From the NCBI RefSeq assembly GCF_028641065.1, contig NC_073397.1, positions 22,196,001-22,260,000 on the forward strand: a stretch of 64,000 bases of DNA. Direction: 5' to 3'. The DNA comes from Leucoraja erinacea (lineage: Eukaryota). Below are positions 22,143-53,794 of this stretch, one piece after another (position 1 is the stretch's first letter; each line of letters begins with the position of its first letter). Under the pieces are notes generated by a model. The model was not told the origin of the DNA. It saw nothing but the letters and a program-made list of their open reading frames with translations, and did not search any database. The translations under genes and the position numbers were made by a program.

Positions 22143-22205
22143 GAGGAACTGGAACAAATTGTATTTGAGGATGGCAGCGGAAGCATGGGATCACCATCTG
22201 TTGCG
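22143..22205 (+). CDS. sowah: Sowah coding exon: EELEQIVFEDGSGSMGSPSVA
   Basis: tgtttttcag acceptor, GCG|gtaagt donor, 63 nt phase 0; ..SVA joins LDPLEKEW to give the SOWAH 'V.LD..E.EW' motif. Confidence 0.9.
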
Positions 22206-23845: not shown

Positions 23846-25317
23846 TTAGAGAAAAATAAATGGGCAAAATCAAAGCTGGAAAGAAATAGTCAAATTACAA
23901 CAATTTGAACATCCCACCACAGCCCAAAATTCAAATGAATCCAATGTGAGAAAGATTGATTCAGAATATTTAACACATGGCATTGTTAAAAGGATGCTCA
24001 TGCCTTAAATACCTGCAGCCGATTTGATTTGTGCATACTCTGCAAACACAGCTGCTGACCTGTATTTGGTATTTCTCAATGCGACACCAAACATCAGCAA
24101 AACCAGTCGTGGAACTGGTTTATTTTCTTTCATTCTGCTTCGACTCCTCACCTGAAATTGTTTCATTAGTTACAAGTATAAAACAACAAGTGGCATTAGT
24201 CTATAAAATCTGGCCCAATTTGTAATGCTGAATGCAGTTGGCAATTTGATCATATTGCTTATGTTCGTTAATCTGCCAATTAGTGACATCATTTACCAGT
24301 TTTTAATGCTATTTTCATTGCCTTAAACTGCTTAGCTTTGAAACATTGCTGGATATTTCAAATTATATATACATACATTTGGTGTTCTCCAATATTAGAA
24401 CTGTAGGCTATTGCACAATTTGTTTTTTTCAATTAATGTAATTGTCTCTTCTATCAATGATAGACAAAACCAATATTGAAAAACTATGTTACTTCAGTAA
24501 GAATTTGCTATTATGAAGAGGTTTTCAATGAAGTACTCCTATGTCAAGATTTTTTATTTCACATCGGTGATGTAATCTGTTTGAATTTTTCTTTATTCAT
24601 TTTATCTTCATCTGTTAAATACTTTCCATGTTGCTTAGATTTCTTTACTTGGCAGTTGTTGCAATGATATTGTATTTTCATTAATGTTTGTTTCATACTG
24701 TCTCTTCATCTAGCCTTGTTACACTATCCTTCTGTTTTTTACTTTAATTATTTAGTCATTTCAAGGGCATTTGTCGTTTGTCTCCGTCACCCCATTGGAA
24801 GTAAGTTCCAAATTTTAAGTATTCTTTAGATAGTGATGTTTCTCTTGAATTCCTTATTGGGTTTAACTAATGGTTTTGTCTTTTGTGTTTTGTCTTTTCG
24901 CTGCCTTTTCTGATCCTCCAGCCCCACATCTGCTTTTTGTCTTATTTTCTTTTGTGATGCATGTTCTAATCCAATTTTCTCTCATGAGGCTCTCATAATA
25001 TACTTCAAAAAAGTATGAACATTGCAACAGGAGTAAACCACTCAGCATCTCAGATGTCTGCCATTAAATCAAAACTGATCTGCATCTTCATTCCATCATT
25101 TTATGTGGTCTACAATCACCCTCTCATGTCTCAGCAACAGCACAATGCGCTGTGTAATCCTGAACAATTGAGGCCTGCATCACACTTTGATTTAATAATG
25201 CAGCATGGAGTGGGCTAGAGATCCTATTTGGAATATATGCCATGACGCCAATTTAAGCAGGACCTTAGGGGATATAATCACTGGATTATTACCCAACTGG
25301 TGTACAAATTGTGCTAC

Positions 25318-30374: not shown

Positions 30375-30476
30375 TTGGATCCTTTGGAGAAGGAGTGGCT
30401 GAAGTGTGCTGCCATTGGACATTTAGCCGCTTTGAGTGATCTTCTCAGGCAGGATCCATCTCTGGCAATGAAAAAG
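30375..30476 (+). CDS. sowah: Sowah coding exon: LDPLEKEWLKCAAIGHLAALSDLLRQDPSLAMKK
   Basis: ttcctaaag acceptor, AAG|gtaaca donor, 102 nt phase 0; SOWAH pre-ankyrin motif LD..E.EW...AA.G......LL..DP.LA.K. Confidence 0.93.
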
Positions 30477-31626
30477 GTAACAATTGCCACATGTGATACT
30501 GAAAAATTACATGGAGAAATAAATGCAACCAAAATATAATAGTTTAAAAAAAAGAAGATAAATGCAATAGTTTCTTGGTGCATTAATTTAAAAGAAGCTT
30601 AATTCAAGCATTTTTTTAGCATAGACTTTAAGTTAAAACTGCTGCATTAAGACCTGACCTGGGAGAGTAATATTCTGCCAACTTTTCCAATCAATATTGA
30701 TCAAATAAATTTAAACTGCACACTATGGCCTGCACACTTGAGTTATCTGATTCATATATGCAGAAACTAAATTTTCTTACTGAAGTGTTCAGTCTTCAGT
30801 TATTACTCCACACTTGGAGTTTCTAGTTTCCTGTAATTGCTCTATATTCAGGGCAATTCCCCAGGTATCAGGAATTTAAACCCCTAGTGTGCAGTTGCTT
30901 GTAACTTAAGTAACAGATAGGTAACAACTTATGCCATTGAAAGGGTATGGGTCTCTCAGGCATCACAGTTATATTACAAATATTTCCGAATAATCAAAAA
31001 AAGTTAAAGGCTAAAATTTTGGGCCACTCAAGTAAGTATTGCAAATATTAACAGCAGGCGGGGCTACTTACTCTTAAGAGTTGCACCTATTCGCCACGCA
31101 TATTAGTTTTACTAAGTATTTAATGTAACATTTGGCACAAATATCAATTCTAATCAAGTAATCAGGAACTGTGATTGGAGTTTCCAGTGAGAGCTGTTTA
31201 TCTTGTGCATACCTGAATTATTGCCTTTATAAATAATGAAATAATTTCACTCGAAGTGGTAGATCAGACCGCAACTAATTCATAGCTTACAAAAAAAAAT
31301 TTGCTCCAACTCCTTGGCGGTCAGTTTCTGGTGGAGTCCACCTCCACGGGTTCTAGAGGAGGCCTTTGTGGAAATAAAATGCAGATTTTTTTTTATTGAT
31401 TGAAAGAAAGCATGGAAATTCTGAATTGAAAAAATTCTGAATTTCAAAAGGAAATCTGGCTCATCAGGATTAACATGCAAATTCACCATCTATTGGATGT
31501 ATTATGCAATGTAATTAAGATAATTTCATGTTATTAAAAATCTGTTCTTTGTCGGTTCTGTAAAAGCTCCAAGAAAATGCATTAAAAATGTTTCTCTTCC
31601 ATGTAAACTTCCATGAAATTCTGAAG

Positions 31627-31638
31627 GACTTCACATCT
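31627..31638 (+). CDS. sowah: Sowah 12-nt microexon: DFTS
   Basis: ctgaag|GACTTCACATCT|gtaagt; supplies the KDFxS of the SOWAH KDFxSGFTALHW motif; about 50 nt AG-free upstream. Confidence 0.88.
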
Positions 31639-31804
31639 GTAAGTATGATTCTTGTCACTTCCAGGTTTTATTTTTATCTTTGAATACAATTTAAATGTGC
31701 AGTATTTAAAACTTGTTCAATACATGTTAGGCTCATTCCATATTGGGCTATTCAATATCAATAACATTTGCACAAAAAGTTAGATGATCTGACAATGCTG
31801 ACAA

Positions 31805-32952
31805 CAGGCACGTGCTGTGAGTAATTACTCAGGGTAGGTAGTCAGTCGGCTTTTAAAAAATCTTAAACGGCGCATGCGCAGATTGTTCTCCTCTCCATAA
31901 GCTGTCAGTCGATTTTTATAAAGTCTTCAAAAGCCATATCTCTTAATAAAGTAACGTATTTCCCGGCAATGAAGAGGCACCCCCATTTTGAGTTGCTAAA
32001 TTTTGAAAGAAGGCTGGTGGGACATAGAATTTCTCACACTCAAAAAAATTAAAATAAGGAAAGTAACAATTCAATTTTCCCAAATCTCCTTCATTCTGAA
32101 TTACTGAATGGGTGCGGGGTGGAGGGTGATGGCAGGTGGAGAGATGGTGGGAAAAACGGGAGCACACTGGGACGTTGAATCAGTTGTGATCTTATTGAAT
32201 GACAATACTAGTTCAAGGGACCAATTGGGGGGAGAGTTCCTTTCACAGCGTGTGGTGAGTGTGGCCAGCGGTAAATTTGCGGGGAGGGCAGCAATGTTGA
32301 GAAGGAGGGGGCCGCGGTGCTCCAGGCGTGGAGCCACCGCATTGTGGCCGGGGAGGGAAGCAGCTCGGGTGGCTGTGAGCGGCCGCCAGGACCGGACAGC
32401 GGAACCGTCCGCCGGGTCCTCGGGGCCTGCCGGCCCGCTAACTTCTGGCAGTGCTCAACTCCGGCCCGCTCACCTCTGGCTGAGTAACCACAATTGGTCC
32501 CTTGATCGCGGTGTCGGAATTTAAGGATTTGCGGAAAGCTGCTGACATTGGCGAGGCCGGCGAGCGGCAGGAGAGAGGTTTTCAGCCGGAGAGCACTGCC
32601 AGTAGTGAGCCGGCCAGCAGAAGGCGCTGAGGTGGCGGCCGCTCGCAGCCACCCGGACTACTTCTCCCCCCCGGCCACAATGCGATGGCTCCGCGACCGG
32701 AGCGTCGCGGCAAGTGAGTTGCTGGCATGATCCCCGACCCCCTCCTTCTCAACGCTCCTGCCCTCCCCGCAACTTAACCCCGGGCCAGACTCCCCACACA
32801 CTGTGAAAGGGACTCTTTTCCCACCCCCCAGCGGCGCTGTCCTTTTACAGCCGCTTCCCATCAGCTGCGAGCAATGAAGGATAGACTTGGCTATCCCTCA
32901 GTACAGCAACATCGTTCTTGAAATAGCGTCTTCACTGCAAGGAAATACGGTA
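31805..32952 (+). mobile_element. Composite GC-rich repeat, copy 2; includes a Tc2/pogo-type MITE (~31954-32950)
   Basis: TIR TA|ACGTATTTCCCGGCAATGAAGAGGC at ~31952-31978 pairs with GCGTCTTCACTGCAAGGAAATACGG|TA at ~32926-32952 (CCGTA-type termini, TA TSD); homologous to 4607-5896. Confidence 0.75.
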
Positions 32953-33911
32953 TTTAAAAAAATATAACTCCAATAAATTTACTTACCATATTATTTGTAC
33001 CTGAACCCTATTCTTCTCTTTTTGTTTCCTAAAATGCTGTTAAGATAAGGACAATCCATGTTTGACAAACCCGCCAAGAAACTTGCCCTGCGCATGCGCT
33101 GTAGGCTGCTGTGCATGCGCAGTACCCAGTCCACGCTGCAAAGGCAGAATTTCAGCTACCTTCAGCTCGCCTTGAAATTGACGGCTTTAAGCAGTGTCGA
33201 AGGCACGTCAGCTGCACAGACTTTAGCGTGTTACAAGCATTGCGGATGAAAGGCATGGGAGAATTATGCCAACCTAAGAGATCGATTTCATGGCCCTATT
33301 ACAAAGAAAAACTGAATTTATCCCTGATGTCTATATAATATTTATCTCTCAAACCTAACAGCATATTAAGAAAATAATTAGCCATTATACTATTGCTGTT
33401 TTGGGGATTTTTCTATGTAAACTTCTAAAATACCTAATTGCAAAAACACTTTTGAAGATCCCAAGTTCTTATAAGACTCATGTGGTTTTACTGCATTGAA
33501 ATGTGGGAATTAATTCACAACTGTTGATATGCCTCTGTCTGAACGCTTTGTAAATTACTAAGGATTTTTATAAATATCTGTCACTGACCACTGTTAAAGA
33601 TTGTGTTAATTTCATGTAAACTCTTGCTTTTTTCCAATAACAATGCATATCTCTCTTCTCAGTAATTATAGCCTGTAAAACTGCTTTAATATTAACAATT
33701 ATAATTATTTTAAATATCGAAGAGATACAAATCCAAATTGACCAAATACTATTTTGCACGACATACTATCTGCCAATAGATCTCAGTTCATTTTGCTCAT
33801 ACTTTGGAAGTTTCCATTCATGACTGAAATAATGTTTCTTTTTTCTCCTCAACTCCTTTGTAATTGATACTCCTATTAATTCAATCAACTTGAAACAATC
33901 TGTGATGATAG

Positions 33912-33914
33912 GGG
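33912..33914 (+). CDS. sowah: Sowah 3-nt microexon GGG (Gly)
   Basis: tgatgatag|GGG|gtaagt; about 99 nt AG-free upstream with a distal pyrimidine tract (33835-33860); supplies the G of DFTS-G-F. Confidence 0.8.
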
Positions 33915-34351
33915 GTAAGTACATGACCACAATGAAATAATTTTAGTCATGCGCCAAAGTGTGTTGTTTGTTACTGATCAAGGAAGATCTATGTTTAGTC
34001 CATGATGTATGGTGAGTTAATTAATCCCCCCCACAGCTATTGGAGGCAGAGCATTCCAATTGGCATGTGCTAAAGGGGGGAATAAATTGATGACAACTCT
34101 ATTTATCTCATAATTTTCCAAATGCTGCTAACCCCAGGATTTGTAGGTCAAGAGAATGAGATTTCACCTTTGAGGTTATGTGTGAATTATCATTGGAAGT
34201 TGATGCTTTTTAAAATGTACTATAGAATGCCATTGAGTGGCCCTTTTCAAACAACAGAACTTATTTATAAAAAGTAGCGCTTTGTAGTAATTATACTTTT
34301 ATCCAATCCTGACACTAATACTTGAAGAATATAAGTAAAATTTCTCATTTG

Positions 34352-34637
34352 AGGTGGCACAGTGGCGCAGTGGTTGAGTTGCTGCCTTACAGCGATTACG
34401 GGTTCGATCCCAACTACGGGTACTGTCTTTATGGAGTTTGTTTGGAGTTTCTCCCCGTGACCGCGTGGGTTTTCCCCAAGACCTTCAGTTTCCTCCCACA
34501 CTCCAAAAGTTTGTAGGTTAATTGGCTTGGTAGAAATATAAAATTGTCTAGTGTTAATATGCGGGGATCGCTGGTCGGTGCGGACTCGGTAGGCCGAAGA
34601 GTCTCTTTCCGCACTGTATTTCTAAACTAAACTAAAT
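34352..34637 (+). mobile_element. tRNA-derived SINE (V-SINE/HE1-like), near full length
   Basis: Pol III A box TGGCGCAGTGG, B box GGTTCGATCCC, core ctccccgtgaccgcgtgggttttc..tttcctcccacactccaaa, (CTAAA)n tail. Confidence 0.85.
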
Positions 34638-36904
34638 TTCTAACACTTCAACATCTTGTGAATAACTGGATTTTTAAAGAATAATTCCCTCTGGTCATTA
34701 ACATGTCGCAATTGTTCAATTAATTGTGGTAGCAATGACTTGTTAAAATGCTAGGACAAGAGAAAACTATGAAGAAAACTGCCCACATAGATATCAATTA
34801 GAAAAATCAGGGTGAGATTACTTTGCTTAATTATTATCTGCTAACATCTACCTCTTTGCAACTTCGATTAATAATATTTTAAATAAGTACGCTTGAAGAC
34901 ATACAATACTTATCACCTCCATCGGCACGTAATGGCTATAGTATATACCATTTAAGAAACGTGTCAAATTTACTCCCCATGACTACTCCAGAAGAACCTC
35001 CCAAACCTGAGATCTCTTCCACCAAGGAACATGGTCTGAAATGCATGGGAACATCATCAGCTTTGGACTTGCATAGGCTTCCACTCAAGAAAATAGGTGA
35101 AGAAGTAGACGCATCAAGCCTGCACCACAGCTCAATAAAATCATGCCACATCTGCCTGAAACTCCACCAAACGTCAACTTATTGCAATTTCCATGCGGCC
35201 TTCAGTTCCTCAAACGCACAAAAATATATCTCTCTCTAAATATCTCAAGTATTATAATGTAGCCTCCACAGGCCTCTGAGGTGGAGAACTTCCTTTACCA
35301 GTGTGATACCACCATCTGAGAAATTATTGTGCACCACAGTTTTTCCAATGATGGCCTCCATGTCTTTTGAACTATGATTTCCTCACTCTGTTCAAAACAT
35401 TCCCACCCTTGGAAACATTTAAGCAGCATTCCAGCTGTGGATCCAATGTTTCAGTCGTATCACCCCACTTCTATCGATTGTTTATTATATCGAAGAACTT
35501 GTGCAAATTTCTTAACATGATTTCCATTTCATGAAACCACGACTTGGTTTGATTGCATTAAGCTTTTCCTTAGGACAAGCTGTTTTTTACTTGATTATGT
35601 GCTCCAGCATCTCTCTGACTTTAGATGTTAAACTACTGACCTATAGTTTTTAAATTAGACAGTCATATGCACAGCTTTCCAATCTACATGTACCTTCCTG
35701 TAGGTTGTTTAGTTTTGACATTTTTTAACGAACAGCGCTACTATCTCTGCATCCCCTTTCTTTAAAACCCATGGTTGCCGACCATTGGTTCTTGTGGATT
35801 TGTCTGTCTTTTATCCCATTTTCGAATACATTGAGCCTTGTGATCGGATGTTACAATTTCTTCCCTCTTATTTGAGACAAGTCATCTGTGATCCAGGAGA
35901 TATCTGTGTTGCCTTAATGCAAACTATTGATTTAAATGATCTGCCATACTTTAAACTATTTCTCTTGCTAATTCACCAAACTCTCACTCAAGGGGTGCCA
36001 TGCTTAGCTACCATTTTCCCTTGAATATCCTCAGAAGCCTGTTTGGTTTCTTCTAATAATTACTTGCCAGTTTACTCTTGTAACCAATTTTCCAACTTCT
36101 TATTAGCTTTTAAGGCCTGCATTGCTGGTTCTAGAAAAAAGTACAGTCCTGTGGTCAACCATGTGCATTTTGCCACTGTATGTTTTCAGTTTTTGTTTTG
36201 ATTGTCTTTGATCTTTTGTTAATCAGGGATGATTAATCTCTCTTATTTGGGTATCTCTAATTTACTGCAATAATTGCCATGGCTCATGTGACTTTTCCTT
36301 TAGGTTATTTTCCCTATCTCTTCTAGACTAATCTTTTTTTAATGTTCCTATTTAAGTTAGGACATTGATTTTTGAACCAAAGGTGTTCATCTTTAAACTA
36401 TCTGGAATTTTATTATGTGGGGATCACTATTGCCTTGAAGATCCTTAACAACAAAATCTGTTAAATCCCATTCATTACGTATGACCAATTGTAAAATAGC
36501 TTGATTCTGGTTGGCTTGTGTAGCATAATTATCTAAGAAATAATCCCTGATGCACTCCATAAATTTATCCGTTACAGTATTCTTGCTATTTTGACTAATT
36601 TAATCAAGCATATAAATTAAAATCGTCCAAGATAATTCTGTCCTACATTTTATGTTTCCATATTTATGCTTTATCCTACTATAAAGCAACTCTGGGGCCC
36701 CATAGACTCATCCCCTCCCCCCAACCCCAACCTTTCCTCTGCTATTTCTTATTTGCACTAAATTGATTCCACATCACAAACAACTGCACCGATGTAAATA
36801 CCCATCACTGCAATGATATCTTGATTAATAATGATTCTCCTCCTTTCCATTTTTGCATATTCTTTTGGAACATCAAATAGCAGGAAATATCATTCCCAGT
36901 TCTG

Positions 36905-37717
36905 GTCCCAGTGAGGCTATTTGGGTGGAACTGAGAAGTGGGAAAGGTGTAGCAACACTTATAGGGGTGTATTATAGACCGCCAAATGGGGAACGAGAAT
37001 TGGAAGAGCAAATATGTAAGGAGATAGCAGATATTAGTAGTAAGCACAAGGTAGTGATTGTGGGAGATTTCAACTTTCCACACATAGACTGGGAAACACA
37101 TTCTGTAAATGGGCTGGATGGTTTGGAGTTTGTAAAATGTGTGCAGGATAGTTTTTTGCAGCAATACATAGAGGTACCTACTAGAGGAGGGGCAGTGCTG
37201 GACCTCCTGTTAGGAAATGAGACGGGACAGGTGGCGGAGGTATGCGTTGGGGAGCACTTCGGGTCCAGTTATCACAATACCATTAGTTTCAATATAATTA
37301 TGGAGAAGGTCAGAACTGGACCTAGGGTTGAGATTTTTGATTGGAGAAAGGCTAACTTTGATGAGATGCGAGATGATTTAAAAGGAGTGAACTGGGACAT
37401 TTTGTTTTATGGGAAAGATGTAGAAGAGAAATGGAGGACATTTAAAGGGGAAATTTTAAGAGTACAGAATCTTTATGTTCCTGTTCGGTTGAAAGGAAAC
37501 AGTAAAAATTGGAAAGAGCCCTGGTTTTCAAGGGAAATTGGACATCTTGTTCGGAAAAAGAGAGAGATCTACAATAATTATAGGCAGCATGAAGTAAATG
37601 AGGTGCTTGTGGAGTATAAGGAATGTAAAAAGAATCTTAAGAAAGAAATTAGAAAAGCTAAAAGAAGATATGAGGTTGCTTTGGCAAGTAAGGTGAAAGT
37701 AAATCCAAAGGGTTTCA
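36905..37717 (+). mobile_element. Young CR1 ORF2 internal fragment (APE endonuclease)
   Basis: Open frame EAIWVEL..GVYYRPP..VVIVGDFNFPHIDW..PTRGGAVLDLLL..HFGSSYH; no 3' tail; embedded in older minus-strand LINE debris (~35400-36850). Confidence 0.9.
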
Positions 37718-38751
37718 CTGGTCCTTTATCATGATTGGGTCTGAATCTTGGCAATCTCCATGCGTATGCACTGAGATTACGTTCACCAGAATGGCGTTGG
37801 CATTTCAGAAAGGCGGGATAAACTATAAATACTGTCCTTTTGAACCATACCCAGATTTCCAAGAAATTGTGAATTTTTAAAAGCAATTCTCTGGTCACCA
37901 GCCTCATACCAGTAATGTTTAGGGAGAGGCATGTTTCTGAAAAGTCTGACATCATCTCTGAATCATAATTCTACTCTGGCTATATTATGCAAGTTAATTC
38001 CTTTTTTTAATAAATCTTTCCAGGGTTCATTTCAAAAAGTCTCATTTTATAATTTCAGTATTCTTATGTGAATTTGAATGGCACGAAATGAAAGGCAATT
38101 TCACTTTGCGGATGTCAAGGCAAACCCTAAACTTACTTACTACAAGTACACTTTCCAACAATCAGAAGAAGGCACTTTAGTTGCTCACATAATTCTAGGT
38201 CAACCATGCTGACCCTTGGTTTCCCTTTAACTGGCCTGGCTGAGATTTTGTTGCATTCATTTCATTTTTGAAATAAGTGAGCTTCTTTTGGCTTTTTATT
38301 TTATGTTGATGTTGTCCCTTAGTTTTGTGAGCTGATGATGTGATGCTCAAACCTTGCATTCACTCCGTAGAATCATTGAGTGATGCAGTGTGGAAAAAGG
38401 CCCAACTTGCCCACCCTGGCCAACATGTCCCAGGTGCAGTGGTCCCACCTGTCCGCATTTGGTGCATATCCCTCCAAACCTATCCTATCCATGTACCTAA
38501 CTGCTTCTTAAATGTTGGGATAGACCCTGCCTCAACTACCTCCTCTGATAACTTGTTTCATACATCCACCACCTTTTGTGTGAAAAAGTTATCCCTCAGA
38601 TTCCTATTAAATCTTTTCCGCTTCACCTTAAACCTATATCATCTGATCCTCAATTCACCTACTCTGAGCAAGAGACTGGCATCTACTCCTCATATGCGAA
38701 TACTCAGGAAATGACAATAAAGATTTACAATTACAATTACAATTACAATAA

Positions 38752-39130
38752 AGGGCCTGTCCCACTATCGTGACTTTTCAGCGACTGTCTTTGACCTTCA
38801 AGCTCGAGGGCACTCTCCTGAAAAACCTCGAGCTAGATCGACCGTCAGCGATGAAACCGCGAGCTGGATCGNNNNNNNNNNNNNNNNNNNNNNNNNNNNN
38901 NNNNNNNNNNNNNNNNNNNNNNNNNNNNNNNNNNNNNNNNNNNNNNNNNNNNNNNNNNNNNNNNNNNNNNNNNNNNNNNNNNNNNNNNNNNNNNNNNNNN
39001 NNNNNNNNNNNNNNNNNNNNNNNNNNNNNNNNNNNCAGGGAAAGCGAGGGAGCGGTGTCTGAAATTCACACCTCCGGTGAACAGGAAGGTCAAAGACGGC
39101 TGGCACAGTTACAGTAAGTCCTTTAGAGAG
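38752..39130. mobile_element. Harbinger-type MITE, left end only, spanning an assembly gap
   Basis: TAA|AGGGCCTGTCCCACT start (same TIR as 9916 and 23160); right TIR not visible. Confidence 0.6.
38872..39035. other. Assembly gap (164 N)
   Basis: Run of n characters. Confidence 1.
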
Positions 39131-39888
39131 CGCTTTTATTGTTTCCACATTTTCTGCACAATTGCATCCAAATTTCCCTTCCAACCACTCATTCCTCCTG
39201 CCACTAGCTTAACTCAAATCCCCACCCCAGGATGACCTGTTTTCTTCATCCGTTCAGAATATACAGTTGAAATAAAGTGAAACAAATTCAAAAGGTACAA
39301 ATACAAGTTAGGAAAGAATAGTGTATGTTGAGAATAAAGTCAATCAACCTTGCAGGGAGGCTGAGCAGAAAATGTACAGGCTGATACTGATATGCACAGA
39401 TGGGAGGATGACCTATAGATAAGAAACTACCAAGAAAATGAACATGGAAGGAGAGATAATACTTGAAAATGAATTGAAATAATTAACAAAATATCACCAA
39501 ATATTCTGGGAAAATGAATGGCAATATATATTACAAAAACAAGATGCAAAAGAGATAACGTGCTTTTTTTTTTTAAACTTGCATTAAGAGAAATAAGAAG
39601 TTTTTGTTTGCATAAAATAATGTTTGAAATTATCCCTTACCAAAAATGAAGGTGCATACAAATAACCTTGCCTATGATTGCTCTTTGACTTGGGGTCTGC
39701 ATGCAATTATAAGTTGTGAATTTTCCATGTTTTATGCAGTACAAAACTACCTTCTATAATTTGGAATGTAGAATAGATTTATTGAAAGTTTTTCTCATTG
39801 ACATTTTTCTTTTTATCTCTTCACAATTTGTTTCTTGTCTTTGAATTGTGGATTATCTTTTCAACGTCGGAAATGATCTTCACGATAG

Positions 39889-39891
39889 TTT
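39889..39891 (+). CDS. sowah: Sowah 3-nt microexon TTT (Phe)
   Basis: cacgatag|TTT|gtaagt; about 98 nt AG-free upstream, branch-point-like CATTGAC (~39796-39802) followed by a pyrimidine tract; supplies the F before TALHW. Confidence 0.8.
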
Positions 39892-41039
39892 GTAAGTCGC
39901 TTTTGTATCGTGTTACGAAATATAGCTAAATAATGTTTATTTTTGCTAAATTTGTAAATATTAATTTTATTAGCTTGTCTTTTTGTTTCGACTTAATGAA
40001 GACCGATGATCAGAGGAGAAAAAAATAATATTGTGTTTGGTCTTGCTATTGCATATAGTCGGGAAGCTTTGCTTGCAGTTATTATGGATTGTTGAGGACC
40101 ACTGGGATAACCCCACTCTTGCAAGTACAATACCCCTGCCATCTCTTTAGATTATATATATTTCTAAGGGCTAGTGTGCATTTAACCAATAGGTGGCCCA
40201 TGATAGATCAATTTCATTTTTTAATCACCATCTCACCACTGTCCCTGCTATCATCTTTGGTTAATGGACTGATGAATGTTTGGTTGTAACTGAAAGTCCT
40301 TGGTATGCCTTAAATAATCCACTCAAAAGAGAAGCTTGCTTTCAGATTTGATTACTCCTTTTATGTAGATAATTGAAGTCTATAGAAAGCAAATCTATAC
40401 ATTAGTCAGTGAAATCGCAGAAATGTCTTTGCCACACACATGAAATCTTTGTGCGTGCTGCTATAAATTACACTTTAAAATTAGGTGTGTATTGTCCAAA
40501 TTGAATGTTTAGATTACCAAGAGACGATTGGCAAAGCTGTTCAGTTTTAATGAGTTGGTAATAATACTGTCTCATTAAAATACATCTACTTCTGGAGGAA
40601 GTTTCTTCTCCCAGGTGTCTAATGAGCCTATTGCAATTACTCCGGTTTTCTTTCTTTCACTAAAATTTAACATAAATATTAAGCTTCAGTTGTGACATTC
40701 CCAGTGAGCAGGATGTTGGTGAGAGCATAACTAGGTCCCTGTTCAGCACAGCCAATGGGTTGCAGCAAGCATCATCAATCATCAGTCCTGTCAAGTACTT
40801 ACACCTTGGCTTCATTTGAGGCACGCTTGGTTTGTTGTTTTGTAATTAGCTTGGCCGAGCGGGCAGGAAATGTTGTACATACACTCGTGAGCAGCTGGCA
40901 AATTCAAGGAATTTTCCAGCATGAAACAGACGGTGAACTACAAACACTGGGCCTCCAAAGAGGGAAGATGATCATCAGATAGTAACAGCCTGCCATATTT
41001 CTTTGGCTAATTTAAGAGACATCTTTGATCCATGTTTGA

Positions 41040-42180
41040 AAAACACATTCATTTAAAATTGTTTTTAACTTTTGGCATATTCTAAAATTATACCAATAAA
41101 CATTTAGCAATAAATTTTTGAAGATTGAGGAAATATTGGTTACTGTCCAGTCCTGTGGGAGGTTGTTTGTGACCACAAAATATACAAAGTTCTTTCTCAA
41201 GAACACTATAAACGCCTCTCTTGCCTCTTCATAACCTGGGATCGATTCCATCAGGGCCTGGGAATTTAATACTCCTAGAGTCCCAATATCACCACTGTTT
41301 TAATCTCAAGTAGCCCAAGCACACTGGTATGCCCCTCACTGATCTCACTGTCTTCTATGTTCTTCTTCTTGATGAAATGTATGTGTGTGTATATATATAT
41401 ATATATATATTAGAACTTATTTCGTACCTTCCATATATCCTCTGACTCCAAGCATAAATTCACTCCTTTATTCTTGATTATCTTCTTGTTTATAAAACCT
41501 TTTTTATTTAAAAAAGATATTCAATTAGATTTGCCAGTGGTATTCCCCAGTGTCCCTTCTAATTTCCCACTTGAGTTCTTTAATGCTTACTTTATATTCC
41601 TCAAATGACCTGTTTGATTTCATCTTTCCAAACCTTGCATATGCTTTCTTTTTGACCAAATTTAAAACATTTTTGGTCATGTAACATTCCCTTGCTATTC
41701 TTATCCGTCCTCCTTGCTGGAATATGCCAGCCCTGGACTCTGATCAGCTGGTCTTTAAATGACTCACATGTCAGATATGGACTTGCCCAATATCAACAGC
41801 TCCTAATTTACTCTTCTTGGCTCCTGCCTAATAATGTTGTAAACTGCCTAACCCAATTTAATTCCTTCCCCAATGTCCAGACTTATTCATAACTATCTTG
41901 AAACATATGGAGTTGTGATCACTGTTCCAAATGTACTCTTTCATTGAAACACTAGTCACCTGACCAGGCGCGTTTCCCAGTTATAGGGCCAGTATGATCC
42001 CCTCCTTAAGTTAGACTATCCACATACTGTTTCAGGAAACACTCTTGGATACATCTAACACGTTCTACTCCATCTAATCTTTTGCACTGAGCAAATGCAG
42101 TCAATATTTGTGAAGTTAAAGTTATGTCAATCCTGTTGCTTTTGCATCTGCTATAGTCTCTTTGCCTATCTGTTCCTCTT
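41040..42180 (-). mobile_element. Old CR1 LINE remnant
   Basis: Minus-strand remnant SIPGYEEAREA..LPQDWTVTNISSIFK (CR1 RT N-terminal region) with APE-like debris; boundaries approximate. Confidence 0.6.
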
Positions 42181-42331
42181 TATCCTCTTATCAGAGATGT
42201 CAGGTTTTTACAATGCCTCTATGTTCCCATTTAATAGCATTTTAAAACTTAAAAGATGAAATGCACAACTATTTTTAAAGGTAAAATGTATTATTAAGTT
42301 AATCAAGTTAATTAATTTATTTTGCTTCCAG

Positions 42332-42418
42332 ACTGCTTTACACTGGGCAGCAAAACATGGCAAAGAAAATATGGCAAGAATGTTAATAAATGCAGGAGTG
42401 GACATCAATCTCAGAGCT
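42332..42418 (+). CDS. sowah: Sowah ankyrin-repeat exon: TALHWAAKHGKENMARMLINAGVDINLRA
   Basis: tttgcttccag acceptor, GCT|gtaagt donor, 87 nt phase 0; canonical ankyrin consensus. Confidence 0.95.
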
Positions 42419-43106
42419 GTAAGTTCCATATTTTCCTTTTTAAATTTACTATACTGCAGAAGGAGGTCCAAAATCTCTTAAAATAAATTTCCATTGTTAA
42501 CGATCTGCAGATGATACAATTGGAACAGCAGCCGATAACATGATTTTTTTTGCTGCATTGCTAATTATAATGAAGAGGAGGCATTTTATTTTCCTTTGGA
42601 GTAATTTTGTTTAAAGTTCAGAGAGCCTAACATCAACGGTCGCAAAGTTACTAGAGAGTATTCTGAGGGATAAGATAGATATGCATTTAGATGACATGGG
42701 ATAGTCTGCACGGTTTTGTATGTGAGAGATCGTGTATCACGAATCTGAGGTTATTTTTTTAAAGATGTGTCCAAAAAGGCGGTTCAGTTTTGGTTTGATA
42801 TATGAAGGATGTCATTAAGCTGAAACAAGTGCAGGGAAGATTTACGAGGATGTTGGCATCGTGCATTGTGAAAACGTGTAGTATCCAAAATTTGCTTTTA
42901 TTTCTTAGAGTGCAGGAGGCTGAGAGGTGATCTTATAGAGGCGTTTCAAATCATGAGGGGAATAGATAGGATGAATGCACAGAGTCTTTTACCCAGGGTA
43001 GGGGTAATAAAATAAAAAAAACGAAGACAAAAATTTATGGTGAGAGAGGCACGATTTAATACAAACCTGAGGGGCAACTTTTTCCAATCAGAGGCTGGTG
43101 GGTATA

Positions 43107-44744
43107 TAGTGCCTTCCATAATGTTTGGGACAAAGTCCCATCATTTATTTATTTGCCTCTGTACTCCACAATTTCAGATTTGTAATATAAAAAAAATTAC
43201 ATGTGGTTAAACACATTGTCAGATTTTATTAAAGGCCATTTTTATACATTTTGGTTTCACCATGTAGAAATTACAGCAGGTTTTATACATAGCCCCCCCC
43301 CCCCCCCCCATTTCAGGGCACCATAATGTTTGGGACACAGCAATGTCATGTTTAGTATTTTGTTGCATATCCTTTGTATGCAATGACTGCTTGAAGTCTG
43401 TGATTCATGGACATCACCAGTTGCTGGGTGTCTTCTCTGGTGATGCTCTGCCAGGTCTCTATTGCAGCCATCTTTTGCTTATGCTTGTTTTGGGGACTAG
43501 TCTCCCTCAGTTTTCTCTTGAGCATATAAAAGGCATGCTCAATTGGGTTCAGATCGGGTGATTGACTTGACCACTCACGAATTGATCATTTTTTAGCTTT
43601 AAAAAACTCCTTTGTTGCTTAAGCAGTATGTTTGGGATCATTATCTTACTGTAGAATGAACCACCGGCCAATGAGTTTTGAGGCATTTGTTTGAACTTGA
43701 GCAGATGGGATGTGTCTATACACTTCAGAATTCATTGTGCTACTACCACCAGCAGTTGTATCATCAATGAAGATAAGTGAGTAAGTACTTCAGCAGCCAT
43801 ACATGGCCAGGCCATAACACCCCCACCACTGTGTTTCACAGATGAGATGGTATGCTTTGGATCTTGTGCAGTTCCTTCTCTCCTCCATACATTGCTCTTG
43901 ACATCACTCTGATGTGTTAATCTTCGCCTCATCTGTCCACAAGACGTTTTTTCCAGAACTGTGGTTGCTCTTTTAAGTACTTCTTGGCAAACTGTAACCC
44001 GGCCATCCTATTTTTGCAGCTAACCAGTGGTTAAACCTGTGGCATCGTGTAGTGTAGCCTCTGTAATTCTGTTCATGAAGTCTTCTGCGGTCAGTGGTCA
44101 TTGACAAATCCACACCAGACTCCTGAAGAGTGTTTCTGATCTGTCGGACAGGTGTTTGGGGGGTATTTCTTTATTATAGAGAGAATTTGTCTGTCATCAT
44201 CTGTGGCGGTCTTCCTTGACCTGCCAGTCCCTTTGCGATTAGTAAGCTCACCAGTGCTCTCTTTCTTCTTAATGATGTTCCAAACAGTTGATTTTGGTAA
44301 GCCTAAGGTTTCGCTGATGTCTCTAACAGTTTTATTCGTCTTTCTCAGTCTCATAATGACTTCTTTGACTTTCATTGGCACAACTTTGGCCCTCATGTGA
44401 TAAACAGCAATTAAAGTTTCCAACGGTGATGGAAAGACTGGAGGAAAGACTAGGTGCTGAGAGCTCTCTTATACCTGCATTAAGCAGGCAGTTAAACACA
44501 CCTGAGCTGTGAAGCCATGTGTCCCAAATATTATGGTGCCCTGAAATGGGGGGACTGTGTATAAACACATTGTAATTTCTGCATGGTGAAACCAAAATGT
44601 ATAAAATTGCCCTTTAATAAATTCTGACAATGTGCACTTTAACCACATGTGATTTTTTTTTTTAATTACAAATCTCAAATTGTGGAGTACAGAGGCAAAT
44701 AAATAAATGATGGGCCTTTGTCCCAAACATTATGGAGAGCACTG
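43107..44744 (-). mobile_element. Tc1 family B, full-length but decayed, inserted at a TA inside a CR1 3' remnant (~42620-44940)
   Basis: Long (>200 bp) TIRs and TA TSD. Minus-strand transposase pieces MRAKVVPMKVKEVIMRLRK..LGLPKSTVWNII and SSVKHSGGGVMAW. The CR1 host reads through as gggtata|tggga. Confidence 0.92.
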
Positions 44745-46255
44745 TATGGGACGAGCTGCCAGGGAAGGTAGTTTAAGCAGATACTATAACAGTATTTAAA
44801 AAACATTTGGACAGGTACATGGATAGGAAAGGTTTAGAGGGATATGGACCAAGCATGGAAAAAGGGATATGCTTAGATGGGAGTCATGGTCGACATGGAC
44901 GAGTTGGGCCAAAAGGCCCATTTCCAAGCTGTATGATTTTAGTTTACAACCTTTTGAATCTCTCCATTGTAGAAAACTGCATCTCTTTACTACATTCTTA
45001 ATATTTGAAAAGTTTCAAATTACAATCCTAATAACCTGATTCAGGGAAATAGTATTACTATATATCCCCAACATGACATGATTATTTACATAATATATAA
45101 TTGTGGAATTCATTTTAATCATTTACATATGTTCTGTAGCACAAACACATTATCTGGGAAAAGTTGTCATTTGTAGAATACACAATCATGAAACAACTAA
45201 ATGCACGAGTAGGCACCGGAGTATAAAACCAGCGGTGGAAGTGGATAAAGGTTAACAAATGTACAAAGCTAATTATAGAGGTCACGATTAGGTGGCTGGC
45301 ATGTCATAGTCTGGAGTAATATAGTGGTCCTTTGGGTATTAGATAGCAGTGCACATGACAGGCAGCTGGAGGAAGAGAATGGACAAGGCAAAGAATTCAT
45401 ACTTGGACAATTAGGCAGGTGCGGAAAATAGTTGAGTGCAAGAAAACATCTTGTTAAAACCATAATAGCCCTATGTGATAAATGATGAATCTGCATTTTA
45501 AAACATTATTCCACAATTGTGTATCATACTATATAAACACTAGTAACAAAATGATGAGGAAAATCTCTAGTTTTGATCACAAATTGGCCCGTGCTTTCAC
45601 TGACATTGTACCAGACCACACTGTTGCTCATGGTAGTGCATGGGTAGTGACTCTGAACACTTATGAACATATCTGTTTTGTCTCATTGTTCATGCATTAC
45701 ATAATAGCTGATATATTGCTGCTTAAACTGCTCTGTGGAATAGGAGATCTAAAAGTGAATCCACAGATTAATCTATTTCTTGTATTAAGAAACAATAATT
45801 TCTGTTATTGTTCCTCGTTGTAGAGCACAGTTAAGTTTGCTGAGAACAAAAGGTAAAATTGTGTTTTAGATCATCATTTATTCTGATGAGAATTATCCTT
45901 AATTCTTTTTTCTTACTGCCTAGCAGTATCTGGCTGGTTTGAACCACTGCCTTTGTTTTATAGCTGCTTTGCATGTTCCAAAAAAGAACATTCAAGTGGC
46001 ATGGCAAGCTCAAAGGAGGATGGTTAATTAGTTGAACCATTGCCTCTTTTATGGGGGCTGATACAGAGTGAACAACAGTATTACATACTGAACTCTTGAA
46101 TAAGTGCAACATATAGATCTGATCATCTGACTTTGGATATTCAAACCCCTTATGTTACTTCCATTTTACTATATGAATTTTTAGTGAAATTGTAATTAAA
46201 GCATTTTTTTTGTTTCCTCTTTCACTGTTTTCTGCCAACTGATGGATAAACAAAG

Positions 46256-46258
46256 CAT
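46256..46258 (+). CDS. sowah: Sowah 3-nt microexon CAT (His)
   Basis: acaaag|CAT|gtaagt; pyrimidine tract 46204-46232 and TGC at 46233-46235; supplies the H of RA-H-G-GYTPLH. Confidence 0.8.
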
Positions 46259-47954
46259 GTAAGTTCAAGCTATTTTATCATTTGTTTTGAGCAATTGTGT
46301 TCTGTTAGATGAAACTACATTTCAGATGATGGAGCAAAAAGGCAAGTGGTCACTGGAGATTTGATTACAACTTTGCAGAATTTAGTTAATTCCAAATTTA
46401 AATCTGTTAACCTTGACATGCTATTATTTGAAACTATATTTTTAATTGCCATTTTTCTGTTGGTTTTCCTTCCCTTCCTTAAAAGCATTGAATCCTTGTT
46501 GACCATGACTTTGTCTGTGGTCAACACACTCATCAACTTCATTATTTTATTCTTGCAAGCAGTGTCAAAAACCTTTTTGACAATATTGAATGAGGAACCT
46601 TGCTTATCTACTATTTGTATTAACAAGACTCCCTGGAATTTACAATGATTAACATTGTTTTGTTTTTGGCTCCAAGCAAATTGAGTTAAATTTAGCACTC
46701 AATGACAGCCACTTCAAATTTTACCACAGTTATAGTGCTGGCACGGAATATACCGGTGGCATGGAATATTGTTTAAACAAGCTGATTACTTATTAACTTA
46801 GTAGGCTAAATATGGTTCTGATTTGTTTTAATTGAATCAAACCTCAAATCACTATTTTGGTAATTCTTGAATTTAAAAAATAGGTAAAGGTGCGTTTTCC
46901 ATTATACTCAAGCACCTGTTTGCCTATAAAGCAACACTGACAGTGCTGTGGAGATAATTGTTGGCAGCTACATTTCTCTCTCCCAAGTTTATCCTGTTCT
47001 TAAGTCAAAAAGAATTATCAAAATTCCCCCAAAAATTGCCTCAAATATTTAGGATATTTCAATTTCACATTTTAAGAAAATTAAAATATCAAAAAATCTT
47101 TTTGTATTGTAAAATCATGCAATATTACAATACCTACACGAAAGATTGTAACTTCCTGGTTACTAACAGTCACTTAATATTTCTCGACATCTATGAAAGG
47201 TCTCACAACTAATAAAGCCTTGTGGTCTTCGAAAGCTTTAATATATTTGTGATGCTTTTGATGTTTGGAGACGTTTAAAAATTACAGATTAATATAAATT
47301 AAAAGATTGCTATCTATACAGAATTTTTTTTTTTAATGAAGTACGCATATATTTTTAAAAGTCTTGGATTCCGCAACAAGGACACCGTAGTGGTTGGGCT
47401 CAAGTATAATGCTGAGGAACCCATCCTGGTGTCCCAATGACAGCTCTTTTTATCAGTTGTAACATTAAATCAGTCTAAATTTGGGACTTGCATATTTTAC
47501 ACATCCAGGACACATTGCTGCAGTTTGAGCAGATACATGACAATAGTTTGTTTAGAGACATCAGAAATTAAGTCACATTTTTTTTTTGGGGGGGGGGCAA
47601 GAGTTTGATACTACAGACACTTTTATCCTTAATCTTCACCATTCTTCATTTATTTTTAAAATGGTACCCTACTGTTAAAATTAGTACAACAAATTGTTTA
47701 AATTCAGTTGTGTACATTTTCTCCATCCATCTTCTATCAATATTATTTATCAATTGAGAAACTTTACAGAATTCAAGTAAAGATGAAGATTATCAGTCAG
47801 TACAGTAGGAATAATTCTGATAGCTGGCAAATTCTGAGATTGGGAGGTGGGACAATTAAAAATAATATTTTATGTAAATGAAATCCTTGGATAATCACTG
47901 CTTGATTAAACTTTTTTTTTCCTTTCTGCTTTTGGTGATTGTCTTCTGCAACAG

Positions 47955-47957
47955 GGA
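47955..47957 (+). CDS. sowah: Sowah 3-nt microexon GGA (Gly)
   Basis: tctgcaacag|GGA|gtgagt; about 106 nt AG-free upstream, U-rich tract, TGC at 47927 and 47947; supplies the first G of HGGYTPLH. Confidence 0.82.
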
Positions 47958-48187
47958 GTGAGTATTGCATGTCTTTTTCATTATTTTCCTTTGCCTGATA
48001 AATTATAAGCATTGGTCTGTGGCTTTAATTTGCTTTTCATGATCACTGATCTAATACTGATGATGCTATGTGCAAGTCGCACACTGTCGGTACCCTTAAA
48101 GCTTTATACCTACCTATAAAAATGAGGCTGTACATTGTTCAGGATTTTTTTAAAGTAATTACATTGTTTAGGATAAAAAAGTAGTTA

Positions 48188-49836
48188 CAGCGCCCTCCAT
48201 AATGTTTGAGACTAAGACCCATCATTTATTTATTTGCCTCTGTACTGCACAATTTGAGATTTGTAATAGAAAAAAATCACATGTGGGTAAAGTGCACATT
48301 GTCAGATTTTAATAAAGGCCGTTTTTATACATTTTGGTTTCACCATGTCGAGATTACAGCAGTGTTTGTACATAGTCCCCCCCCCCCCCCCCCCCCCCCC
48401 CATTTCAGGACACCATAATGCTTGGGACACAGTAATGTAATGTAAATGAAAGTAGTCATGTTTAGTATTTTGTTGCAAATTGTTTGCATGCAATGACTGC
48501 TTGAAGTCTGTGATTCATGGACATCACCAGTTGCTGGGTGTCTTCTCTGGTGATGCTCTGCCAGGTCTCTATTGCAGCCATCTTTGGCTTATGCTTGTAT
48601 TGGGGACTAGTTCCCCTTCAGTTTTCTCTTGAGCATATAAAAGGCATGCTCAATTAGGTTCAGATTGGGTGATTGACTTGACCACTCAAGAATTTATCAT
48701 TTTTTAGCTTTAAAAAACTCATTTGTTGCTTTAGCAGTATGTTTGGGATCATTGTCTTGCTGTACAATGAAACGCCGGCCAATGAGTTTTGAGTCATTTG
48801 TTTGAACTTGAGCAGATGGGAGGTGTCTATACACTTCAGAATTCATTATACTATTACCATCAGCAGTTGTATCATCAATGAATATAAGTGAGCCAGTACC
48901 ATCAGCAACCATACATGCCCAGGCCAGAACACCCCCACCACCATGTTTCACAGATGAGGAGGTATGCTTTAGATCTTATGCAGTTCCTTCTCTCCTCCAT
49001 ACTTTGCACTTGCCATCATTCACATATATGTTAATCTTTGTCTCATCTATCCACAAGACCCTTTTCCAGAACTGTAGTTGCTCTTTTAAGTACTTCTTGG
49101 CAAACTGTAACCTGGCCATCCTATTTTTGTGGCTAATCCAGTGGTTTGCATCTTGCAGTGTAGCCTCTGTACTTCTGTTCATGACATCTTCTGCAGACAT
49201 TGACAAATCCACACCTGACACCTGAAGAGTGTTTCTGATCTTTCGGACAGGGATTTTTCTTTATTATAGAGAATTCTTCTGTCATCAGCTGTGGAGGTCT
49301 TCCTTGGCCTGCCAGTCCCTTTGTGATTAGTAAGCTCACCAGTGCTCTCTTTCTTCTTAATGATGTTCCAAACATTTGATTTTGGTAAGCCTAAGTTTGG
49401 CTGATGTCTCTAACAGTTTTAAGCTTGTTTCTCAGTCTCATAATGGCTTAGTTTACTTTCATTGGTACAACTTTTGTCCTCATGTTGATAAACAGCAATA
49501 AAAGTTTCCAAAGGTGATGGAAATACTGGAGGAAAGAATAGGTGCTGAGAGCTCATTTTTACCCAATTGCCTCCTTAATCTAGGTTTATGCCTAGATTAA
49601 GGAGGCAATTAAACACACCTGAGCAATTACAAATGCCTGTGAATCCATGTGTCGAAAACATTATGGTGCGCTGAAATGGGGGTACTATGTACAAACACTG
49701 CTGTAATTTCTACATGGTGAAACCGAAATGTATAAAAATGGCCTTTAATAAAATCTGACAATGTACACTTTAACCACATGTGATTGTTCTATTACAAATC
49801 TCAAATAAATAAATGATTAGTCTTTGACCCAAACAT
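48188..49836 (-). mobile_element. Tc1 family B, near full-length, decayed
   Basis: TA|CAGCGCCCTCCATAATGTTT TIR; minus-strand [33 protein letters not shown]. Confidence 0.92.
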
Positions 49837-50658
49837 GTATTTTCAATCTTTAACTTTATTATTATGCACTGACGTATGTCAGAACTTTGGGGTGGGGGCT
49901 AAAACGGACAAAATATCTAATGTGTTGCTTAAAAGTTAACAGATCAACACTGCTTTGTTGTAACGTAAGCAAATGAGAGGATTACCAAACATCGCAATAA
50001 AGATGATGTATCTTTTGTACAATTAGCACTTCGGTAACAAAATGCAAGCTTTATCCTCAGTTGGTAGAATTGTGTATTCTTCCATCAGTAATCATTTCTC
50101 TAAGAGATAATCTTTAAAATTATTTTGTTACCCCAAATAAATGAACTATTTATTTATTCTTAACTGTTTGTAGAGATATTATGAAAATACGTGCAGATAG
50201 TCTCTTTAATCAGCCTTTTTTTTTTTTTTGCAACAAGAGAGTCTGTTGTCCCACTGAAGAACACGTGAAATAATCCAGATGCTGGAAATCTGAGTTAATT
50301 AGTTAAATATTGTTATTTTGATTTGGCAGCATCTGTGGTTGAAAACTAACAACCCTTAATGGGTTTTAATCTATTTGAAATGGGATGGTATAGAAATTGC
50401 AATATGCTTTTGATTGTGTGATGAAGCAATTGCTTTTGAGAAATTAATATCTCTTAGCTATTTTCTGAACTTTTTGTTAAATGTTGATAAAATAAACATA
50501 ATGCCTTTAGATGGTATAATTATTTTGTTCCTTGATTTATCATTACATTCAATAGAAGAAACAAAAAGATCTGCCTAACAGTTGTATTACGTTTTTGGTA
50601 TTTCTTCCCACAAAGCTTCATCTTATTTTAAAGTAAGACTGGTTAACTGTTTTCTCAG

Positions 50659-50731
50659 GGGTACACACCTTTGCACATAGCAGCACTCCACTCCCACTTG
50701 GACATCATGGATCTTCTTATTCATAACTATG
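50659..50731 (+). CDS. sowah: Sowah ankyrin-repeat exon: GYTPLHIAALHSHLDIMDLLIHNY(G)
   Basis: tttttctcag acceptor, ATG|gtgaga donor, 73 nt (phase 0 to 1); ankyrin TPLH motif. Confidence 0.95.
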
Positions 50732-53698: not shown

Positions 53699-53794
53699 GT
53701 GCAAAAACAAATGTAAGAGACTATAGTGGACGGTTTGCATCCCACTATCTAAAAGACAACGATGATTCTACAGATTGTTCTAACATATCTTCAA
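53699..53794 (+). CDS. sowah: Sowah coding exon: (G)AKTNVRDYSGRFASHYLKDNDDSTDCSNISS
   Basis: tttttcaacag acceptor, CAA|gtaagc donor, 96 nt phase 1 to 1; SOWAH hallmark GA...RDYSG..A..YL. Confidence 0.95.

Follow-up and report, generated by a model that had tools for sequence, protein, structure and literature searches.

The 64,000-nt stretch of the little skate (Leucoraja erinacea) genome analyzed here (contig NC_073397.1, positions 22,196,001 to 22,260,000 of the forward strand; hereafter the window) carries the 3′ two-thirds of an intron-rich gene of the SOWAH (sosondowah ankyrin repeat domain) family. The ankyrin domain of this gene is, with high probability, encoded by three ordinary exons (A, B, and C) together with five microexons, all of which are spliced into the main mRNA. 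The microexons fall into two runs, one of a 12-nt exon (DFTS) and the single codons G and F between exons A and B, and the other of the single codons H and G between exons B and C. They contribute 24 coding nucleotides within 20,071 nt of intron, a figure that includes one assembly gap of estimated size and that the first-pass annotation of this DNA had put at about 20 kb. All splice junctions linking exon A through the microexons and exon B to exon C are in phase 0, and the introns measure, in order, 1150, 2273, 5974 (including the estimated gap), 2440, 3837, 1696, and 2701 nt.

The first-pass annotation had proposed that six residues missing before TALHW and two missing before GYTPLH are supplied by five tiny units, each bounded by AG and a consensus donor. 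The positions of all five proved exact, and each has the form AG/codon(s)/GTRAGT. The order and the codons of the units were likewise borne out, whereas the end points given for the large exons were off by 1 to 2 bases; the borders we use are those in Table 1.

Proteins derived from transcripts provide evidence for this arrangement. A phmmer search with exon A alone (34 amino acids [aa]) against 1.84 billion representatives returned 42 matches, one of which, the basking shark protein P0005, served as the query for a homologue search. The cluster of the Logan-derived protein P0046 includes P0169 (10 contigs) and P0170 (5 contigs), with a length of 433 aa and contigs of ~2.5 kb; because the gene occupies more than 43 kb in the window, a 2.5-kb contig must be spliced. 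We translated the window exons one by one, with no joining, and searched P0169 and P0170 for identical strings. Exact matches were found for 13695-13844 (residues 175 to 224), exon A (246 to 279), DFTS (280 to 283), exon B (286 to 314), exon C (317 to 340), 53701-53793 (342 to 372), and 57073-57252 (374 to 433). The residues left over between exon A and exon C are G284-F285 and H315-G316, as the single-codon islands predict, so that the missing six and two residues are indeed DFTS-G-F and H-G. The microexons are thus present in mature mRNA, as seen at the protein level, and in place of direct AAAAAG-ACTGCT and AGAGCT-GGGTAC joins the transcript-derived orthologue proteins contain all eight residues. 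P0046 itself (433 aa) differs from the window by a single residue, in exon A, and is 100% identical to 13695-13844 by tblastn.

We also compared contigs from four runs of a related skate (X1 to X4) with the window over positions 39100-43090. No sequencing run recorded as RNA contained the stretch. The designation of these four runs as RNA began as a guess (“RNA?”), and they contain 6 to 13% of its words; we took them as RNA because they contain spliced contigs and because exon depth lies far above intron depth. For the contigs of X1 (1045 nt), X3 (3130 nt), and X4 (1076 nt), similarity to the window is confined to 42332-42418, where a single synonymous substitution separates them from it. These exon B contigs have depths of 54 to 150, compared with 3 to 10 for the intron contigs of the three runs. 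The X2 contig (1302 nt) is spliced at 42332 and continues into the intron after exon B as far as 42673. The contigs of X1 to X4 thus represent spliced RNA from a close relative and fix both borders of exon B exactly. P0046 may originate from the same organism as these runs. Over 42419-42673, contigs of both X1 and X2 join exon B to the start of the next intron, that of X2 being a partly processed transcript.

Table 1. Features of the SOWAH-family gene in the window (positions are those of the window; a slash marks a splice border)
Feature	Position	Strand	Details
Upstream coding exon	13698..13844 (5′ border approximate)	+	residues ~176-224 of transcript protein; acceptor cag/, donor AAG/gtattc
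63-nt coding exon, EELEQIVFEDGSGSMGSPSVA	22143..22205	+	phase 0 at both ends; ttttcag/GAGGAA ... GTTGCG/gtaagt
45-nt alternative cassette exon, SFQGHLSFVSVTPLE	24756..24800	+	phase 0; tttag/TCATTT...TTGGAA/gtaagt; between 63-nt exon and exon A
Exon A, 102 nt, LDPLEKEW...SLAMKK, degenerate first ankyrin-like repeat	30375..30476	+	donor AAG/GTAACA
Pyrimidine-rich tract, 14 nt	31589..31602	+	22 nt from AG of DFTS
Microexon 1, 12 nt, GACTTCACATCT = DFTS	31627..31638	+	AG/../GTAAGT; residues 280-283 of P0169
Pyrimidine tract, 29 nt	33833..33861	+	48 nt upstream of G acceptor, inside 99-nt AG-free zone
Microexon 2, 3 nt, GGG = Gly284	33912..33914	+	AG/GGG/GTAAGT; G284 in P0169, P0170, P0046
Assembly gap, 164 N	38872..39035	.	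inside intron between G and F microexons
Pyrimidine tract, 34 nt	39789..39822	+	64 nt upstream of F acceptor, inside 98-nt AG-free zone
Microexon 3, 3 nt, TTT = Phe285	39889..39891	+	AG/TTT/GTAAGT; F285 in transcript proteins
Exon B, 87 nt, TALHWAAKHGKENMARMLINAGVDINLRA, TALHW..INLRA, ankyrin repeat	42332..42418	+	donor GCT/GTAAGT; RNA contig borders
Pyrimidine tract, 35 nt	46202..46236	+	17 nt upstream of H acceptor; TGC at -23
Microexon 4, 3 nt, CAT = His315	46256..46258	+	AG/CAT/GTAAGT; H315 in transcript proteins
Pyrimidine tract, 28 nt	47906..47933	+	19 nt upstream of second G acceptor; TGC at -28, -8
Microexon 5, 3 nt, GGA = Gly316	47955..47957	+	AG/GGA/GTGAGT; G316 in transcript proteins
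Exon C, 73 nt, GYTPLHIAALHSHLDIMDLLIHNY+G, GYTPLH..HNY+G, second canonical ankyrin repeat	50659..50731	+	exact match in transcript proteins
Coding exon after C, 96 nt (..AKTNVRDYSGRFASHYLKDNDDSTDCSNISS..)	53699..53794	+	tblastn, exact match in transcript proteins, splice sites
Last coding stretch (..FQQSRGGRRNRKLAGLF...YKAVRKFSR)	57071..57255	+	stop TAG 57253-57255

The single-codon islands are rare in this DNA. In the whole window, AG-NNN-GTRAGT occurs six times on the plus strand and once on the minus strand, and four of the six plus-strand occurrences are the microexons; the remaining pair consists of GTG at 20551 and a stop codon, TGA, at 43778. When the donor is relaxed to any GT, the stretch between DFTS and exon B (31639-42331) contains one AG-GGN-GT (33912) and four AG-TTY-GT (34437, 34510, 37129, and 39889), of which only 39889 has a consensus donor, and the stretch between exons B and C (42419-50658) contains one AG-CAY-GT and one AG-GGN-GT, both of them the microexons. 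In 5000 shuffles of these two intron stretches, which kept mononucleotide but not dinucleotide content, a consensus island arose 50 times for the first G, 76 times for F, 32 times for H, and 62 times for the second G; the order G before F was seen in 2 shuffles, and neither H before G nor the full set of four occurred in any. The joint analytic expectation for the four islands is ~2.5e-9. We concluded that the four-island pattern is beyond chance.

Extension of the ordinary exons was considered as a source of the residues and was rejected, as the bases after exon A, DFTS, and exon B read V-T, V-S, and V-S. An Rfam search of 30000-51000 gave no match, and so no known RNA gene accounts for the islands.

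It could be argued that the islands are chance matches after all and that the eight residues are supplied by alternative 5′ or 3′ splicing of the large exons, by a paralogue, or by artefacts of contig assembly. What favors this is that the junctions are known at the level of protein and that the Logan proteins are unlabelled. Against it stand the chance calculation above, the exact borders of exon B at 42332 and 42418 in the RNA contigs, and the fact that the DNA adjoining the exon borders encodes neither GF nor HG. Furthermore, P0169 and P0170 contain the translations of all other window exons unchanged, which speaks against a paralogue, and the eight residues recur in independent transcript-derived proteins of seven clusters. 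We regard this explanation as extremely unlikely.

The assignment of Phe285 has a rival of its own, since four AG-TTY-GT islands lie between the G microexon and exon B. The residue could come from the island at 34510, whose AG follows a C/T-rich stretch and whose donor is GTAGGT, from 34437 or 37129, or from an exon hidden in the assembly gap (38872-39035), unread DNA that might conceal another F island. A full GTAAGT donor is found only at 39889, and this site is built like the G microexon: its acceptor is ..GATAG, the zone free of AG spans ~98 nt, and the 34-nt pyrimidine tract is distal. An F island with a consensus donor arose by chance in the 76 shuffles given above. The islands at 34437 and 34510 lie within a stretch (34350-34600) that resembles a tRNA-derived short interspersed element (SINE); ARAGORN found no tRNA-like gene in 34250-34700, and there is no second copy of the repeat within the window. 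We consider an origin of Phe285 other than 39889 very unlikely. The gap is the only run of N in the window. G284 directly adjoins F285 in the transcript-derived proteins, so no coding residue is lost at the gap and the reading frame is independent of it, whereas the length of the G-F intron (5974 nt) is provisional because it rests on the estimated gap size.

Several points weigh against the reading of the domain as three exons and five microexons. The codons GGG, TTT, CAT, and GGA are deduced from the residues rather than read in mRNA, and the Logan proteins come without organism or tissue label. The skate protein cluster has 23 members, 8 of which lie beyond those listed and could include skipped forms. 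A second plausible F island exists at 34510 and possibly another in the gap, as described above. For other species, the separation of the exons would follow from the pattern of errors in gene models and not from the DNA of those species, and the order of splicing and role of the set-back pyrimidine tracts that we propose below may hold on the strength of two weak hints.

Family motifs (TALHWAAKHG and GYTPLH) and a conserved C-terminal tail are present in the skate protein by Pfam and alignment, and it shares with other SOWAH proteins a degenerate and two canonical ankyrin repeats, carrying KDFxSGFTALHW and HGGYTPLH, and a ..KFSR tail. PF25877, the N-terminal winged helix of SOWAHA-C, appears in the precomputed Pfam annotation of P0046, P0005, and most orthologues; our own hmmscan of P0005 and P0023 listed Ank families only. 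By tblastn, the exons for residues 1 to ~174 lie outside the 64-kb window. NCBI names for the orthologues are inconsistent (SOWAHA, B, C, D, or D-like, HOS4-like, ASB14, ANKRD1/2/54, ACBD6, and “uncharacterized”).

Placed on the ankyrin fold, the microexons complete the loops between repeats. In the register of the Pfam Ank profile, exon B covers positions 4 to 31 and exon C starts at position 2, while Pfam gave no match to exon A alone; by counting, G-F takes positions 2 and 3 of repeat 2, and H-G straddles the boundary between repeats 2 and 3 (positions 33 and 1, respectively). In a phmmer search of the PDB, ..INAGVDINLRAHGGYTPLH.. aligned without gaps to the canonical 33-residue repeats of ankyrin-B (4rlv), and KKDFTSGFTALH aligned to ..TTESGFTPLH. 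Judged by these alignments, the microexons give the repeats their canonical 33-residue spacing, and their loss would shorten the loops by 6 and 2 residues. The AlphaFold model of P0169 (alignment A1) has a mean predicted local distance difference test (pLDDT) score of 55, with values of 61 to 93 across the ankyrin part. It places helices of exon A at 248-259 and 262-271, a loop at residues 278-283, and the beginning of a helix at 284, with H315 and G316 between bridge residues 314 and 318, that is, at a hairpin tip. The model supports a position of both loops in the inter-repeat hairpins. Thus the placement of the runs in hairpin loops, as first proposed, agrees with the Pfam register, the model, and the ankyrin-B alignment; the loops may, as was also suggested, be part of a ligand-binding face.

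Automated annotation had been expected to miss such exons, and for this gene it does. The little skate RefSeq models XP_055508370-72 (LOC129707394, “uncharacterized”) end ..LAMKKDFTSVSMILVTSRFYFYL, which is window DNA read through the donor of the DFTS microexon (..DFTSVSMILVTSRFYFYL*), and in a second model, XP_055508373 (133 aa, “SOWAHB-like”), which begins within exon B, ..NLRA is joined to GYTPLH with no H-G between them. The RefSeq annotation of the little skate therefore splits the gene in two at the microexons. Five thorny skate RefSeq isoforms have DFTSGF, DFTSF, or DFTSG, followed by H or nothing, and the second G is present in none of the five. Separate short models that start inside the ankyrin part are found in the sharks Heterodontus francisci, Chiloscyllium punctatum, and C. 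plagiosum (123 to 133 aa) and in the newt Lissotriton helveticus (105 aa), and the matching N-terminal model of the newt reads through the DFTS donor.

These errors could be counted among the 120 listed relatives of P0005 with the help of two landmarks: TALHW downstream of the last residues of exon A, and GYTPLH downstream of those of exon B. Both landmarks are present in 94 of the proteins. Both runs are complete in 7/7 Logan proteins versus 5/87 genome annotation models with both landmarks; the other 82 omit or garble at least one microexon. In the first run, the 113 annotation rows read DFTSF (31), no landmark (23), DFTSGF (17), nothing (10), DFTSG (7), DFTS (4), F alone (2), DFTSVS (2), and DFTSVI (2), with 15 singletons such as VNFVL and GWVSW. 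In the second run, they read nothing (33), HG (30), no landmark (22), H (10), VS (10), G (2), and DG (2), with four singletons. The “VS” of such models is GTnAGy, a donor read as two codons that keep the frame. The five models in which both runs are correct mean that the exons are already implicit in the databases.

If the G, F, H, and G exons were missed one by one, models with a lone G, F, or H would result, as they do here, and this pattern suggests that the 3-nt exons are also separate in chimaera, sharks, sturgeon, paddlefish, gar, teleosts, lungfish, and caecilians. The coelacanth model has HG and a garbled first run. Both runs are present in transcript proteins of a newt-like cluster (P0062 and P0173) and in a Pogona model (P0266), and among 18 complete proteins, from skate to lizard, D280, F281, G284, F285, H315, and G316 are invariant and S283 is nearly so. 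As far as protein sequences can tell, the arrangement is an inherited one, extending from chimaera and sharks to teleosts, coelacanth, lungfish, amphibians, and reptiles and to a second teleost paralogue. Mammalian SOWAHA-D genes probably consist of a single exon. Neither homologue search (queries P0005 and P0010) returned a genuine mammal or bird match among its best 120 rows; one protein, P0073, carries Mustela putorius furo as a second source name, which we took as a mislabel.

All units being in phase 0, up to 32 in-frame combinations are arithmetically possible, and it had been suggested that skipping could tune binding one residue at a time. The arithmetic holds. The tuning finds no support in the orthologue transcript-derived proteins, which include every unit in 7/7 cluster representatives and in P0169, P0170, and P0173; the one variation found among transcripts is of the all-or-none type and belongs to a teleost paralogue. 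A related possibility is that the microexons are real but regulated, being skipped in some skate tissues to give shorter ankyrin hairpins, perhaps as an all-or-none block. In its favor, any combination stays in frame, the TGC motifs upstream of the H and second G exons resemble those associated with SRRM3/4 control, the thorny skate RefSeq isoforms differ by single microexons, and transcript proteins of the second teleost paralogue have either all eight residues (P0178) or none (P0200, P0228, and P0251). On the other side, apart from the all-in orthologue proteins, the single-residue RefSeq isoforms stand beside artefacts (VS, VNFVL, and GWVSW) and are unreliable, since aligners are reported to lose sensitivity below 8 to 10 nt (PMC7821500); the teleost forms without the residues may represent a lineage-specific loss. 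Only one contig per run was listed over exon B, and rare variants drop out of contigs. Regulated skipping in the skate is, in our judgment, unlikely, and we return to inclusion in the main mRNA as the preferred reading.

The second teleost paralogue, found in the search with P0010, has no winged-helix match and shows DF(V/I)T, G, F, and then H, G, with all partial forms occurring in models. P0200, P0228, and P0251 (the last of which is close to Danio models) read ..KK/TALHW and ..R[AS]/GYT.LH without any of the eight residues, while fathead minnow models of this paralogue contain DFVT(G) and HG. The all-or-none difference may reflect alternative splicing or loss in some lineages. Some RefSeq isoforms of the paralogue skip exon B entirely (KK/GYTPLH). 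A bolder proposal, which we offer tentatively and consider doubtful as a whole, is that the five in-frame microexons, with their two neighboring single-codon pairs, are skipped or included as a block, forming an ancient splicing module of jawed vertebrate SOWAH genes that would predate the split of cartilaginous and bony fishes, with long- and short-finger isoforms that bind different partners and with an obligatory order of intron removal.

The splice signals around the microexons differ from those of the ordinary exons. The AG-free zones upstream, put at 50 to 106 nt by the first-pass annotation, measure 51, 99, 98, 52, and 106 nt, compared with 18 to 31 nt for ordinary exons (64 nt for exon A), and the longest pyrimidine tracts measure 14 to 35 nt, compared with 9 to 20 nt. 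Four of the five donors are GTAAGT and one is GTGAGT. A TGC within 40 nt upstream is found only for H, the second G, and exon B and for none of DFTS, the first G, and F. The two pairs thus have different designs: the tract is distal (48 to 64 nt) and TGC is absent in the G/F pair, whereas the tract is near (17 to 19 nt) and TGC is present in the H/G pair.

We propose that each 3-nt exon, with its consensus U1 site three bases after the AG and its long set-back tract, would form a recognition unit of ~60 to 110 nt. Branch-point/U2AF assembly and U1 binding would then be spaced tens of bases apart despite the 3-nt exon, and the two introns that flank each such exon would most likely be removed one after the other and not together. 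The hints of slow steps are that the X2 contig retains the intron after exon B and that many shark, ray, and newt RefSeq models read through the DFTS donor. Upstream of neural microexons, the distance from branch point to 3′ splice site is reported to be longer than usual (human medians, 45 versus 34 nt) and extended pyrimidine tracts to be distal, which was proposed to buy physical space (PMC12871342), and for SRRM4-dependent microexons a steric clash of U1 and U2 was described, with the downstream intron mostly removed first (PMC10250204). The skate exons share with SRRM3/4 (eMIC) neural microexons strong 5′ splice sites, extended and set-back tracts, and a long span between branch point and 3′ splice site. 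TGC lies upstream of H and the second G, whereas DFTS, the first G, and F lack it within 40 nt, and inclusion looks constitutive in the contigs seen.

Other known systems resemble the skate gene in part. Single 3-nt exons are in print for cytohesin-1 (PMC6314551), for MAP4K5 (a three-base exon; PMC8632122), and for Drosophila homothorax (PMC7392893), and RPS24 has a 3-bp exon in a run of 3-, 18-, and 22-bp microexons (PMC12207440 and PMC11162997). These are reported to be AG/GT-bounded exons that encode one in-frame residue, are conserved, and are often missed by aligners and annotation, all of which applies to the skate exons. The published cases are reported with one 3-nt exon per gene, usually alternative, unlike the four 3-nt exons and one 12-nt exon in two runs within one domain of the skate gene, all included in the transcripts seen. 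Ultra-short plant microexons (PMC8831610) are 1 to 15 nt long and ancient, have conserved GTRAGT donors, occur as adjacent pairs (5 nt plus 12 nt in rice), and are absent from reference annotations; intronless plant copies were explained there by reverse transcriptase-mediated intron loss. The skate exons are like them in being tiny, ancient, and adjacent, in their GTRAGT donors, and in the wrong protein models that result, and unlike them in kingdom, in that about half of the plant exons are not multiples of 3, and in lying among introns of 1 to 6 kb.

Recursive splice sites are zero-length exons (AG/GTAAGT). Like the single-codon exons, they place a consensus 5′ splice site just behind a 3′ splice site within long intronic DNA, implying stepwise removal. 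Recursive splicing was rejected for the skate gene, as three bases remain in the mRNA and a residue in the protein. Our literature search found no account of SOWAH gene structure, although supplementary microexon tables could still list sowah-like events, and found no report of two neighboring 3-nt exons in one gene.

Upstream of exon A, the 45-nt cassette exon (24756-24800) is present in little skate RefSeq isoform X3 and in thorny skate isoforms X1 to X4 and is absent from the Logan proteins P0046, P0169, and P0170. Two similar transposon-like copies, which look Tc1/mariner-like by eye, occupy ~43100-44750 in the B-H intron and 48200-49800 in the G-C intron; they have long C runs at 43296 and 48378 and a 110-aa open reading frame (ORF) on the minus strand at 44091-44423. 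The stop codon island AG/TGA/GTAAGT at 43778 lies inside the first copy. Just after exon C, 51100-51900 is G+C rich, carries long ORFs that overlap in several frames of both strands, and resembles a tandem repeat. Long ORFs at 6221-7921 (566 aa), upstream of the exons, and at 36853-37734 (293 aa), in the G-F intron, look like retrotransposon proteins.

To our knowledge, 3-base exons are the smallest coding exons reported by animal pipelines. Here, four of them serve one domain, as two neighboring pairs among introns of 1.7 to 6 kb, apparently with inclusion as the default and kept since before sharks and bony fishes diverged. The gene offers a natural, compact system for the definition of 3-nt exons, with two signal designs side by side. 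It also puts a measure on the failure of annotation, both loops being right in 5/87 models, and comparative and structural work on the family inherits these errors. Teleost paralogue mRNAs without the eight residues indicate that the ankyrin fold tolerates both loop lengths, which makes a functional switch testable. If the block-wise splicing module proves true, SOWAH genes would provide a test bed for how the spliceosome defines a 3-base exon.

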